Assembly: GCA_977016875.1 (NCBI GenBank)
Contig: CDRNST010000162.1
Location: 2,666,001-2,730,000 of the forward strand
Length of the DNA stretch: 64,000 bases
Direction of reading: 5' to 3'
Source of the DNA: Pavona decussata
Taxonomy: Eukaryota
Within the stretch, counting starts at the first letter, position 1, and each line of letters starts with the position of its first letter. Shown in pieces: positions 447-30,782 of the stretch. Made by a program: the position numbers and the translations under genes. A model generated the notes under the pieces. That model was not told where the DNA came from. It did not search any database and saw only the letters and a program-made list of their open reading frames with translations.

Positions 447-2560
447 CTTGTACAACAAGTAATGTCGTAGCAGATGAATAATTATTATGGGCACTGTTTA
501 TAACCAGACATGTGTAATTCCCAGCAACGTCTACGGTGCTTGCATTGATTCTCAATTGAACTTGGCTTTCATTGAAATCTACAATAGACCCTTGTGTAAA
601 ATTCTCAGCGGAAGCATTTCTTGAAATAACAGTTCCATCTTTTTCCCACTGTACTTCAGAAGGTGTTGGTGAAGAATTGTAGTGGCAAGTCAACAGAATG
701 TCATTTCCTATAACAACAAACTGTTTTGGAGGTCCATCAATTGTCACCTCTGGTTTAACTGCAATCAAATGCAAGACAGTATTGCAGTCAGTTAATAGTA
801 AAACATCTGGGATGTTCAAGCCATCTCATTTTCATGTATTTGCTTTGTTTTATGTACAGCCAATGACAATTATTCCTGACTAATTTGCATTTGTCAGTTA
901 GAGTAAAAAACAAACAAGGAAACTAAGGGGAATTTAAAAGAATGAATCAGTAACAAGCACTGGACAGGTGCACTGCCAAGGAGTCTCACAAGAACAATAT
1001 GGTGCAGGCATAAACCTAGAACAGAGGACAATCATGATTTATATAATATTGAAGGGTGGCCGTATTGGAAGACATAATATTGATGTCAAATTATGTCATA
1101 AGCATAGAAACTAGGAGACTAGTCATGTCAGCGAGAGTGCACCACTTGATGCCTTCCAATATCCCACAAATTATATCAAATGCACTGTGTTGCTTAAGTC
1201 CCTTAATGACCTAGGATATGCTAATGCACGACCCCTGGGCCAGACAATTATGGGAAAATGTTGCATTAATGACTCAGGAGGATGAGGGTTGGGCGCTGCT
1301 GGAATATTATTGACTGATGCATAATGTTTAGATGAAAAAGTGTAGTCTATTTATTAAACCAAATTTAAAACACCATATGCATGTAGCAGTTAAGAAGCTG
1401 AATCATGATGTGACAACATTGATCGTCTCAGCAGCTAGCACATGATCAATGCACAATAATTCTGTTTAAGTGGATTTTAAATAAGGTGAAAAAAATGCTT
1501 TGTAAATGTATACAAGATTAGTGAGACATTGATTATGTCTACAAAGTTTCAGGTTTGTTACTTACATAACTTAAAAAGTTATGGATAGTAGTTGGATTGT
1601 GATTTCCTGAGATGAGAGGAGTGTCAGGTCAAAACCTGACTCACCACATAATAATTATAATACTGAACCTGAGAAGTCTCATAGAGACTAACATCTATTG
1701 ACTTTTGATAACTCCTTACCGACTCCCTGCCATAAAAACTTAATGGAACTTCAAGCATATGATAAGATAATGGCAAATATATGGAGTTATAGAAACAGCG
1801 AAAGAATACTCTGGCATAAACATTGATAATCTACATGGCAAAACGTTTCGCTTTCACAGAAACTGCAGTTTCACAGCTGAAGCTGAAATATTGATTAGGA
1901 TAAACACCACGAAAACATCACTGAATAGTTTAAAAATTCTATATTCGGAAAACTCTCAATTTGTAATTAAGCTCAAAAGAATTTGACATAAGTGTGCACC
2001 TGTAATTACAATGAGCATACCTATTAATGATTTGGGAGAATAATAAAGTTTAAATTTTGATTTGCGCAAGTAAAATATTTCGATTACTATCTTGTCGCGG
2101 TATTCAGGCCTTTATAAATCACCCACGTACAAGGAAGTCGAAAATATAAAACAATATGGAACAGCAATAACTTATATAGCTGCTGTGAAAGTGTAACCGG
2201 TCTGCTTCATCGTTTCCGAAATATCACTCAAAGATAACTTTCTTTAATTTCAGACAAAAGTGTTTCTTTGCGATTGTAGATCGAAACAGATCGAAGTTAA
2301 AGATACAAATAAATCGGAATTGAACGTGTGTGGTATTAAACGTAAGATAAATAACGCGAAGAAGCCCGCCAGTAAATACACATGAATACACGGTCGTTAT
2401 TTCCGCTTTAGAATCAAGAACTGAAAGTCTTGTTTTCAAAACTAAGAAACAAACATTTACCTGCTTCAGCGGCCGAAGACAATACCACCAGCAATAAGAG
2501 TGAACACAAGCCTGACACGTGAAATTTATGGACGATTTTTCGCACAAGATGTTCGTCCAT
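447..2560 (-). CDS. 5' end of a second Ig-domain receptor gene, paralogue of the RPTP at 40507-64000; continues off the left edge
   Basis: Exon 1 is 2560-2461 (ATG, MDEHLVRKIVHKFHVSGLCSLLLLVVLSSAAEA, hydrophobic signal-like, phase-1 donor GTAAAT). Exon 2 is 758-447 (312 nt, AG/GT, phase 1-1) and encodes an Ig domain ([21 protein letters not shown]...[11 protein letters not shown]). This domain is highly similar to the Ig exon at 63708-64000, and intron sequence 1-110 resembles 63215-63305. Confidence 0.8.
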
Positions 2561-28200: not shown

Positions 28201-30782
28201 GTGATTAATGCATTTGTGTTGTGAGCGCTGACGTCTCCAAGGTTGCATTATAGTCAGAGAAGGTTGAAGAAATGTAAGAAAACGTTCTAAATGTATTTTT
28301 GCTGAACGTTGAAGAAAACCTTGTCAATTAATTTCTCACTGCAAATCACTTACATTGGACGTCTAGATTAGCAGGTTTGGAGGTAGCCGTGTTGTTCGCC
28401 ACACATCGGTACTGTCCACTGTCTGCTCTGCTCACATTAATTATGATCAACGTCTTATTGTCCTCTCCAAAACTGATTCTGGAATCTCCACTCGTTCTTA
28501 TAGGGGATCCACCTTTGGTCCATGATATTGTAGGTGCAGGATCTCCAGTGGCGTTACAAGAGAAAGTCACGTTAGCTCCTTCGTTTTCTGTCACATTCTG
28601 TGGATGTTCTGTGATCTGAGGTGCAACTGAAATTAGAAAACAAATCCGTTACCTGATGTTCAGGGCCTTTGCCTGGCAAGACATGATTTATGCCTCATTC
28701 TAAGGCTCTGCTGTGAACTGCGGTGTAGCTGAAGGAAGTAAAAGAAACAGTCATATCTAATATGCAAGGAGAATATCTTCGAGGTTCTCGCGTGCGAAGA
28801 CATTTTTTGATGTCTGAGTTATCATCTACAATGTTGTCGATCACGAAGGTGTTGTTGTTAGCTATTTTTGTGTTTAGACTGCTGGTTATCTTCTTTTTTT
28901 ATTTAAAATTCTTCCAACATACAGTAAAGAATCCGTATTCAGTCATCTGAAATTACTGAAGAGTATATTTTTCTTATCATTTGATACAGTGGCTGGCATT
29001 CCATCAAAACCAGATAGGTATTGTTTTTTTTTTTTTTTTTTTTATGGCAGAACTGGGCATTGTTACTATACTATTGACATGTATTAATGCAAAATATCAA
29101 ATAAGTCAGTGAACCAGGCGTCATTGGAGAAGGGCTGAAAGAGCGAGAAACTTGGAAGAGTGAGGGAAGTCCCCACATTTCCCCCACTTTTCTCGCTCCC
29201 CCCCCCCCCTCCCCCACAATTACGCCTGATTCGCAGGTTAAATAAACATACTCATCTCGTCTGTAGCTTGAAAACCCGACCGTCAGATTACTGGGAAAAT
29301 CAAGATAAGCAAAAGCCCTAATCCTTGGATGACATTATCATGTATGCACAAACATTGAAAGGAGTGGTAACTTTGTGGAGACACGGAGGGCCCGTCTTCA
29401 ATAATTCACGGGTTTTTTGTTTGATGTAATCTTGATGTTGATAAGTTAAGGCAACTTTAAACGAGCTGAAAAAACTACTACTTACAAAAAATAATTATTC
29501 TCAAAATAACACACTTTAAATATGAATCTTGAGCTAAAGCCACCGCCATTTTCGCGGAAGGAAAACCGTAAAGCTGAGAAAATTAGAACACAACAGAAGG
29601 AAGAGACACTGCAGACAGAGCAAGGGTAAGTCAAGGAAGTTCTTGCAATTTAATTTGGGATTGTCAAGGTCTGAATTGAAGAGGATTGGTTTCCATCCAT
29701 TGTTAATGGGTTCGAGGCTTAAACCTCAAACTCAGGGGCTAAATATCAGCCACAGCACTGGAAGTTTGACATGAACTTTTCATAAGGTAGAACCCATTAG
29801 AGTCTTAGAGGGCAAAACGTGTAACAGTAAGTCTTTCATCAGTAACACTAGTTTTTGTCTTCACAGTTAACTGCTGAGGTTTTTTAGAGTCTTAAAAGTG
29901 GCTCACTATTCGGATCACTGCAGTAAATTGTGAAAATGGATTTGCCAGTAACGCTAAAACGAGTAGTGAGACAGATCCAAGGTTATTTAGGCTTATGTAT
30001 TAAAATTCTTGCAAAACAATTTTTGTACGGATATTCAGGTATGCGAGGTTTGCGTAACGCACTCGCAATCTGACAAACGAAACGGAAGAGATGAGAAATA
30101 TTGATATGTTAAGAGTATTTCTCAATGCCAGCGTCTTCGTTTGGAGGAAATTAAACAAAAACGTCTTAACAATGAACAACCAAGGAACGCGTACGTTAAA
30201 GAAACTCATTATCAATTCTTAGGAGAAAGGAATGCTCTTTTAACGAGACAAAAGCAAATCTAGGACTCACGTCTTCTCTAACCTAAGACAGTAGCAAGAA
30301 ATTCTCCTTAATGTGCTACATACAGTTGTGTGATACCGGTTTGGAGAATTTTTTGTTAAATCAAGCCTTTCATTATCTTGCGACTTGGTGGATTTTTTCC
30401 AGTTTTCTTAATAAAACCGATCACTTCTATGAGGGAAAATTGTGGAAATGTATGTTGTAAAATATGCTTTACACTGAGTAATTTCCGTTTTTAACAAGTA
30501 AGTAATCCAAGGTGTTGTCAGCGAAACGTCGATCTTGAACTACTGCATAGCGAAAAACTTTTCATCGGTTAGCAAGAATACTAAGAATCAACATTTACTT
30601 TAGCTACTAGCAATACAGGTACGATACTTTGTTAGTTTAAGATTGTAAATGACACCGAAATCGTTTGTAGTAACTGCTAGGCGTTATGTTCGTAAACACT
30701 TTCCGTTTTACAGCTTACCTTCTTTGGACGCGGAGAGTATACATCGAACAAAGAGTAGTAATAGTTGTAGTGCCAGCTTCAT
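4222..30782 (-). CDS. Secreted or cell-surface protein with 19 tandem Ig I-set domains (hemicentin/NCAM-like repeats); 3' end unresolved
   Basis: Signal exon 30782-30719 (MKLALQLLLLFVRCILSASKE, phase-1 GTAAG donor; a second in-frame ATG lies at 30803). One Ig per exon, all AG/GT, phase 1-1, lengths divisible by 3: 28626-28354, 28164-27880, 27465-27181, 24682-24401, 24211-23927, 23516-23232, 21970-21686, 21258-20977, 20566-20282, 19020-18736, 18306-18025, 10909-10625, 9897-9613, 9248-8967, 8147-7863, 7527-7246, 6406-6119, 5708-5421, 4512-4222. Motifs are CxAxGxPxPxxxW and L(T)IxxVxxxDSGxYxCxAxN. Whether all exons belong to one transcript is inferred. Confidence 0.8.
6048..9550. repeat. Tandem segmental duplication, period about 1741 bp, two intact Ig exons plus one truncated exon per unit
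   Basis: Sequence from 6421 (aaatcattcacctgatgtaagcag) recurs at 8162. Introns and exons are collinear and nearly identical. Confidence 0.85.
6831..6921 (-). pseudogene. Truncated Ig exon remnant (3' third only); second copy at 8569-8660
   Basis: Keeps the DSGNQ..CAADNMVIESVTSNAASLNVQ-like end and the GTAAAT donor, but the 5' two-thirds of the exon and its acceptor are missing. Confidence 0.7.
11951..12323. mobile_element. Degenerate fold-back MITE bounded by TTAA
   Basis: Imperfect inverted arms (ttaaccgctgtaaaacctaaaaaaataagaaa ... tttcttattttttagatttcaccacggttaa) extend inward for more than 150 bp. Confidence 0.55.
19096..19910. mobile_element. Non-autonomous DNA transposon with 9-bp TSD (Mutator-like by TSD length)
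   Basis: TSD AGAGGAAGT at 19087-19095 and 19911-19919. Termini are GAGTTT...AAACTC with inverted subterminal cgagtcaagttcgagtca repeats. Empty sites (ggtaagaggaagtgggaatactcc) exist in sister introns, e.g. about 18346. Confidence 0.8.
22046..22860. mobile_element. Duplicate copy of the 19096-19910 element
   Basis: Same sequence and same TSD at offset 2950, so it was copied with the segmental duplication. Confidence 0.8.
24857..26627. mobile_element. Non-autonomous TIR DNA transposon containing a nested MITE
   Basis: TIRs gagcttaagatccgacgacggcgggtgtct / agacacccgccgtcgtcggatctaagctc. The paralogous intron at about 28790-28815 shows the empty site (gtgcgaagacattttttgatgtctgag). Confidence 0.8.
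25245..25867. mobile_element. Tc1/mariner/pogo-type MITE
   Basis: TA-flanked termini CAGTTGAACCTC...GAGGTTCGACTG with repeated subterminal gaggtggccgtt motifs. Confidence 0.8.

Follow-up and report, generated by a model that had tools for sequence, protein, structure and literature searches.

The vertebrate receptor protein tyrosine phosphatases (RPTPs) of the LAR type carry three immunoglobulin (Ig) and eight fibronectin type III (FN3) domains, undergo furin processing and bear two protein tyrosine phosphatase (PTP) domains, D1 and D2 (PMC8711739). A stretch of 64,000 nucleotides from the stony coral Pavona decussata, positions 2,666,001-2,730,000 of contig CDRNST010000162.1 (hereafter C162), encodes a signal-peptide exon (SP1) and an array of 19 Ig exons, followed by the start of a receptor phosphatase gene whose remaining exons lie past the left edge of the stretch. 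We call the whole of this stretch the window; negative coordinates and those above 64000 continue its numbering beyond its edges. A further 70 kb to the left was fetched for the downstream exons, and the sequence examined contains no stretch of N. The signal-peptide exons, the 19-Ig array, the next Ig exon (Ig20), and the FN3 and PTP exons are all on the minus strand.

SP1 and the 19 Ig exons are very probably the 5′ part of a gene that continues at position 758 with Ig20, the whole forming a single minus-strand gene. This gene would span approximately 88 kb, from roughly 2,696,800 down to 2,608,400 of C162, and one mRNA of 13 kb would run from position 30782 to the PTP domains. The encoded order would be a signal peptide, 19 Ig domains, Ig20, approximately 16 FN3 domains, a juxtamembrane exon with the basic cluster KRKRR, a transmembrane (TM) helix, D1 and D2, so that the membrane anchor for the Ig array would lie approximately 54 kb downstream of Ig19. 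Homology searches were run exon by exon, and the predicted joined protein, as the sum of these exons, would have roughly 4,300 residues with 20 Ig and approximately 16 FN3 domains. To our knowledge, this would be the largest Ig/FN3 ectodomain on any receptor tyrosine phosphatase.

RNA joints from the Ig array to Ig20 and beyond

RNA contigs from four runs (X1, X5, X7 and X10) were placed on window positions 440-6439. Runs X1, X7 and X10 bear the source organism's own label; X1 and X7, whose label as RNA is a guess, were judged to be cDNA from their spliced contigs and exon-only coverage. X5 is a coral metatranscriptome with 95-99% identity to the window. These contigs tell neither abundance, nor transcript ends, nor strand.

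Record 4 of X1, a 385-nt contig with a k-mer depth of 12 and zero mismatches to the window, covers 695-758, 4222-4512 and 5421 onward, and thereby links Ig18, Ig19 and the exon at 758 in succession. Both introns have been removed, with CT..AC ends on the plus strand that correspond to GT..AG on the minus strand. The 4222-to-758 joint is the one that the earlier note had set beforehand as the test of its proposal that the array is a long ectodomain, in a 20-Ig form, of the downstream RPTP paralogue. The phase compatibility it had claimed also holds, with T+TT giving Phe and the reading ...LEVH-F-KPEVTI, and the colinear paralogues and the other coral described below bear out the same proposal. 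The RNA boundaries at 4512, 5421, 5708 and 6406 equal those derived beforehand from the sequence alone, and X1 and X7 together cover exons only (447-758, 4222-4512, 5421-5708 and 6119-6406). X10 covers Ig20, 30 nt of Ig19 and, with one contig of depth 2, the intronic positions 1851-1997; this contig is all that X1, X7 and X10 have between 840 and 4039. Where contigs of X1 and X10 stop aligning at 447, their tails agree with positions -629..-600 in 30/30 and 29/30 letters, and therefore the Ig20 exon is spliced onto an exon outside the window, approximately 1 kb beyond its left edge, at C162:2,665,400.

It is barely credible that the Ig19-Ig20 joint is an artefact, whether a chimera assembled from Ig exons that resemble one another or the product of a processed copy elsewhere in the genome. 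The array is repetitive, and certain other RNA joints are clearly cross-mappings between paralogous exons, but Ig19 and Ig20 are the two least repetitive exons, Ig19 sharing only 29-43% identity with the remaining 18 of the array, and the contig is free of mismatches over three exon segments and breaks exactly at canonical splice sites. Whole-assembly searches, which covered the 602-Mb stony-coral assembly, found only two close copies of Ig19 elsewhere, 89% identical at C171:1,716,532 and 88% identical at C206:881,434. Record 4 of X1 does not come from a paralogue or processed copy, because no other Ig19 copy exceeds 89%.

The exons of the proposed long form that lie in the window, with the intron that separates the array from Ig20, are as follows.

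30719..30782, minus strand: SP1, first coding exon of the long form; ATG at 30782, encodes MKLALQLLLLFVRCILSASKE plus one base, phase 1, donor GTAAGC at 30718 (read from the sequence)
28354..28626, minus strand: Ig1 exon, 273 nt, phase 1-1, I-set E 1e-24
27880..28164, minus strand: Ig2 exon, 285 nt, Ig domain match
27181..27465, minus strand: Ig3 exon, 285 nt
24401..24682, minus strand: Ig4 exon, 282 nt
23927..24211, minus strand: Ig5 exon, 285 nt
23232..23516, minus strand: Ig6 exon, 285 nt
21686..21970, minus strand: Ig7 exon, 285 nt, protein identical to Ig10
20977..21258, minus strand: Ig8 exon, 282 nt
20282..20566, minus strand: Ig9 exon, 285 nt
18736..19020, minus strand: Ig10 exon, 285 nt
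18025..18306, minus strand: Ig11 exon, 282 nt, Ig domain match
10625..10909, minus strand: Ig12 exon, 285 nt, preceded by a 7.1-kb intron
9613..9897, minus strand: Ig13 exon, 285 nt, Ig domain match
8967..9248, minus strand: Ig14 exon, 282 nt
7863..8147, minus strand: Ig15 exon, 285 nt
7246..7527, minus strand: Ig16 exon, 282 nt
6119..6406, minus strand: Ig17 exon, 288 nt; RNA contig ends or joints at 6406 and approximately 6119-6122
5421..5708, minus strand: Ig18 exon, 288 nt; RNA junctions at 5708 and 5421
4222..4512, minus strand: Ig19 exon, 291 nt, donor GTGAGT; whole exon within X1 record 4
759..4221, minus strand: intron 19, 3463 nt, spliced out in RNA
447..758, minus strand: Ig20 exon, 312 nt, phase 1-1; joined in RNA to Ig19 on its upstream side and, on its downstream side, to the first FN3 exon (-600)

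A segment scan of the minus strand gave 19 stop-free Ig-like segments between 28648 and 4217 and another at 825-376. Every array exon is open, 273-291 nt long, divisible by three and of phase 1-1, with one pyrimidine-rich AG acceptor and one donor of the GTAAGT/GTGAGT/GTAAAT type; together the 19 exons amount to 5400 nt, or 1800 codons. The six that were sampled (Ig1, Ig2, Ig11, Ig13, Ig18 and Ig19, of the 19) score as I-set/Ig_3 with E values of 1e-18 to 1e-24, and Ig20 is a more divergent Ig domain (Ig_3, E 1e-13). A tblastn search with the array exons revealed no extra, broken or decayed Ig exon in the array gaps or long introns. The array appears to have grown by recent tandem exon duplication, because Ig2 to Ig11 are 78-100% identical to one another. 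A tandem duplication of approximately 2.95 kb, with three Ig exons per copy, occupies window positions 18013-24217, where 18013-21264 and 20965-24217 are 96.6% identical over 3.26 kb. It is either very recent or an assembly collapse or expansion, and the Ig exon count of 19 could vary among individuals.

An array of in-frame cassettes invites the idea that exons are skipped or chosen combinatorially, so that a single gene would yield many ectodomains on a phosphatase, in a Dscam-like receptor that couples recognition to catalysis. We consider this very unlikely, and equally so its extension to fast evolution by exon duplication and to self/non-self or symbiont recognition in corals. The only hint of such use comes from ambiguous contigs that would join Ig15 to Ig17 or Ig15 to Ig18, which the cross-mapping of near-identical exons can explain. 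Joints from 5708, 6406 and 4512 to 6131 were also considered as exon skipping and were rejected, since they proved to be ends of paralogous exons that had been aligned to the wrong copy.

Intron 19 and its second signal-peptide exon

Intron 19 contains two elements that bear on the structure of the gene.

2470..2560, minus strand: second signal-peptide exon, ATG at 2560, MDEHLVRKIVHKFHVSGLCSLLLLVVLSSAAEA, phase 1, donor GTAAAT; intact, skipped in the long form
994..2974, minus strand: extra piece of approximately 2 kb, not in paralogous loci; carries the second signal-peptide exon

The paralogous loci place these elements in an evolutionary context. The C206 locus and one of two loci on C171 (A-type) are colinear with the window in the order FN3a (the first FN3 exon), Ig20, Ig19, except for 994-2974, whose counterpart in both is only approximately 80 bp. 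The colinear blocks are FN3a, window 351-973 (Ig20 and its flanks), 2975-3225 (intron) and 4208-4620 (Ig19). The second C171 locus (C-type) has the same Ig20 and intron flanks, without the 994-2974 piece and without a close Ig19 homologue. In other coral assemblies a word search found Ig19 homologues with 56-89% identity, as single-exon open reading frames (ORFs) none of which spans the junction. A contig of another coral, approximately 63-68% identical at the protein level, encodes on one strand two Ig exons, an Ig19-like exon, an Ig20-like exon 1.96 kb on, FN3a and six more FN3 exons. In the two paralogous loci and this other coral, the Ig19-like and Ig20-like exons are 1.1-2 kb apart with no signal-peptide exon between them. 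The adjacency of Ig19 and Ig20 in one gene is thus, on sequence comparison, old, because paralogues and another coral keep the Ig19-like, Ig20-like, FN3 order, and the 2-kb piece is the new element. A contig of another coral assembly, ERZ26692694 (720,935-741,273), carries a rearranged or inverted copy of the junction region, with Ig20-like exons on both sides of the Ig19-like exon; it was left out of the synteny comparison since its Ig20-like exons are inverted relative to the Ig19-like exon.

The earlier note had stressed that the array has no visible anchor nearby, and this observation stands: all 19 exons are open, and the 1.66 kb between the end of Ig19 (4222) and the second signal-peptide exon (2560) contain no credible anchor exon. 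It is therefore necessary to weigh an arrangement of two transcription units, in which a secreted 19-Ig protein ends after Ig19, a separate one-Ig phosphatase starts from 2560, and the junction is a rare read-through. We think this arrangement improbable. The secreted protein could end by either of two routes, each likewise improbable: read-through of the Ig19 donor, which within three codons meets an in-frame stop (HCE*, TAG at 4214-4216) followed after approximately 225 nt by an AATAAA at 3991-3996, or a weak exon with its acceptor at 3916, which yields only SDHFRWF*, as had been noted before. In favor of two units are this stop and AATAAA, the intact 2560 exon with a 5′ flank conserved in a neighboring gene, and the observation of the junction in one contig only. 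Read-through chimeras usually splice the upstream donor to the second exon of the next gene, and the skipping of a downstream first exon matches that pattern. However, X1, X7 and X10 contain nothing over 2640-4039 or the 2560 exon, yet Ig17 to Ig20 are covered; they give no support for the read-through stop, the AATAAA or the 3916 acceptor, and the X10 contig at 1851-1997 does not reach this candidate 3′ end region. The Ig19 donor, GTGAGT, is a consensus donor, and the close spacing of Ig19-like and Ig20-like exons in paralogues and another coral, with no first exon between, argues that the single gene is ancestral. A secreted decoy would be at most a minor product, and nothing supports it.

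The single gene is compatible with a further possibility, which we hold tentatively and consider somewhat doubtful, that both forms are made: a promoter at approximately 30.8 kb would give the 20-Ig receptor, and a promoter within intron 19 would give a receptor with one Ig and 16 FN3 domains starting from 2560, as the earlier note had proposed. An ATG, a hydrophobic core and a donor are all retained in the second signal-peptide exon, which differs from the first coding exon of the neighboring phosphatase gene at 4/91 nt and one amino acid (approximately 96% identity). Approximately 300 bp of its 5′ flank is conserved with that gene. A Porites harrisoni model (KAM7436105.1) has a signal peptide resembling the second one joined directly to an Ig20-like domain, and a Desmophyllum model has an SP1-like signal peptide, MKVATQLFLLCTLCIFSAGG, and one V-like Ig domain before its Ig20-like domain; therefore both kinds of start occur in the family. 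These two models were the useful N-terminal ones from a profile-free search with Ig20 against 1.84 billion representatives, which gave no full-length orthologue and was dominated by unrelated multi-Ig giants at approximately 30% identity, the close relatives being single-exon fragments.

Against a second form, X1, X7 and X10 have no coverage of 2440-2639, and a 2470-to-758 junction is absent from all four runs, which as contigs cannot prove absence. The sole contig in this region, from X5 over 2371-2517, was discounted as expression evidence: it is unspliced, two of its six differences (a deletion at 2447 and C>G at 2437) match the paralogue copy, and X5 coverage extends over introns and intergenic DNA. 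The near-identity with the neighboring gene covers the exon and the proximal intron, with divergence further upstream, and may be due to a recent gene conversion and not to selection for use.

The sole other genomic copy of the 994-2974 piece is the 5′ end of the neighboring microexon phosphatase gene, at positions 64190-65936, to the right of the window. Two histories fit its origin, a gene conversion from the neighbor into intron 19, or the loss of DNA between an Ig-array gene and a phosphatase gene, by which the 5′ half of the former came to lie directly upstream of the promoter of the latter and was fused to it. The 2560 exon is accordingly either a relic of, or a copy from, the start of the neighboring gene. 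Ig20 has its best match in the Ig exon of the neighbor (90%) and Ig19 in the C171 A-type gene (89%), and such a mosaic of identities would be consistent with repeated exchange among paralogues. In the transcript observed, the second signal-peptide exon is spliced out with the rest of intron 19.

The FN3 stalk, membrane exon and phosphatase domains

The exon at -600 onto which Ig20 is spliced encodes an FN3 domain (E 1.6e-13), approximately 1 kb to the left of Ig20. FN3 exons continue on the same strand to about -45.6 kb: 14 have canonical phase 1-1 sites with a CAG acceptor and a GTAAGT donor, and two further segments at approximately -5.0 and -45.3 kb show the same pattern, for a total of approximately 16. 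The stalk of the downstream gene is thus of the conventional FN3 type, and sampled downstream exons score as Pfam fn3 and Y_phosphatase. Two kinds of FN3 exon alternate from -12,900 to -41,500 in roughly six tandem copies. All six exons of one kind (6/6) share their open segment with a fused piece of a GIY-YIG (Penelope-like) element, and therefore a retroelement piece has been co-amplified inside the introns.

The juxtamembrane exon contains the basic cluster KRKRR at approximately -49,340, and KRKRR or RRRRK is found in the C171 paralogues. By analogy with the site at which LAR is divided into its two subunits, this cluster is a candidate for furin cleavage. The exon that follows, at -50.0 to -50.4 kb, reads ...AIAAGVIVPLVIVAAIAAVIFYYRRRQ..., and a single TM helix, judged by eye, lies in the open segment -50009..-50413 (...GAIAAGVIVPLVIVAAIAAVIFYYRRRQ...). 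Two PTP domains follow from -52.9 to -57.6 kb (C162:2,608,436-2,612,943, minus strand). Four sampled PTP exons, with E values of 3e-15 to 5e-31, represent the beginning as well as the end of two distinct domains. In a ranking of PDB matches to the first D1 exon, the top five are PTPRF, PTPRS and LAR (E 4e-76 to 2e-74), and the next class is PTPalpha (E 1.5e-57). Judged by these matches, the downstream gene is a genuine LAR-like receptor phosphatase, which may be either an orthologue of LAR or a coral-specific paralogue.

If the protein is made as predicted, it may be cleaved by furin into E and P subunits, and an ectodomain for adhesion or recognition may control tyrosine dephosphorylation.

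In the neighboring phosphatase gene, the FN3 part is replaced by a microexon stalk and the KRKRR juxtamembrane exon is missing; its own signal-peptide exon is at approximately 65,640. Copies of the microexon-stalk repeat also occur at 67792-73285 (C162:2,733,800-2,739,300), upstream of that signal-peptide exon, and the neighboring gene may likewise extend further upstream in a form that bypasses its signal-peptide exon. An X7 contig that reaches the acceptor at 758 runs upstream into 119 nt of Thr/Pro-rich sequence resembling the microexon repeat units at 49-62 kb, with 3-4 mismatches in 30. Some paralogue apparently joins a microexon to an Ig20-like exon, and its source locus was not found. 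Two long retroelement ORFs also lie in the window.

32449-34365, minus strand: reverse-transcriptase (RT) ORF of 638 aa, between the two phosphatase genes
42599-44029, minus strand: RT/GIY-YIG ORF of 476 aa, inside the D2 region of the neighboring phosphatase gene

Relatives of the gene and comparison with known systems

Elsewhere in the assembly, phosphatase-free tandem clusters of paralogues of the Ig-FN3 family occupy C171:1,590,000-1,740,000 and C206:875,900-884,800. The 150 kb of C171 contain tandem genes of two kinds, none with phosphatase domains: the first is composed of an Ig array, Ig20, FN3a, further FN3 exons and a juxtamembrane exon, and the second of Ig20, FN3a and many FN3 exons. 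In two of these paralogues, the homologue of the TM exon keeps only its extracellular part and then diverges, in one case into the short hydrophobic tail GAFLFALFLFFYYFG. The phosphatase-free paralogues may be anchor-only or secreted relatives.

Several points weigh against the single gene as we have drawn it. The paralogues with Ig arrays on C171 and C206 lack PTP domains, and no TM or PTP exon was found in a further 10 kb of the other coral's contig, with no PTP domain within 8 kb past its last FN3 exon, so the combination of array and phosphatase may be specific to this locus and recent. Only one contig, from a single run with a guessed RNA label, carries the 4222-to-758 junction. Support for the gene as a whole comes from short contigs, from which we infer a single molecule that extends from SP1 as far as the PTP domains; the splice from SP1 to Ig1 and most of those within the array are predicted from the exon sequences. 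An intact internal signal-peptide exon with approximately 300 bp of conserved 5′ flank would also allow a separate downstream transcription unit.

With these points taken into account, a single gene that begins at SP1 would resolve an apparent orphan, because the 1800 residues of the Ig array would then be anchored and coupled to signalling. The locus shows how such receptors are remodelled, by tandem exon duplication and by an exchange of 5′ ends among tandem paralogues that placed an entire spare first exon within an intron, and sister genes lost the phosphatase or swapped FN3 domains for microexons in the stalk. To coral biologists, the locus presents a candidate receptor for recognition at the cell surface whose read-out is directly enzymatic. 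Annotators should be aware that gene-calling programs will probably break the locus in two at the internal signal-peptide exon. We found no literature description of a phosphatase with an expanded Ig array from corals or other cnidarians, within a coverage that was incomplete, and annotated gene models may exist.

The underlying biology is the domain expansion of a familiar receptor class. As in the type IIa RPTPs (LAR/PTPRF, PTPsigma and PTPdelta, Drosophila Lar and C. elegans PTP-3), the order in the coral gene is Ig, FN3, a basic furin-like site, TM, D1 and D2. Unlike the vertebrate LAR-RPTPs, the coral gene has 20 Ig and approximately 16 FN3 domains, most of which are recent tandem exon copies. 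The domain classes and their order match the type IIa receptors, and the ectodomain departs from the canonical three Ig and four to eight FN3 domains. The coral gene is plausibly a variant that acts like a LAR-type receptor, rather than a canonical member of the group.

The array itself resembles Dscam, hemicentin, sidekick and the contactins in its long series of I-set domains, each encoded by its own phase 1-1 exon, and in their tandem exon duplication; as in Dscam-type proteins, any exon of the coral array could be skipped with the frame kept intact. In contrast to the coral gene, Dscam, hemicentin, sidekick and the contactins carry no phosphatase domains. In its splicing, the locus is similar to conjoined (read-through) genes and to genes with alternative first exons, since the upstream donor joins the first internal acceptor and skips the next first exon. 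Unlike the case in conjoined genes, the joined arrangement in the coral is ancestral, because the paralogues lack the internal first exon, and it is the internal first exon that is the addition.

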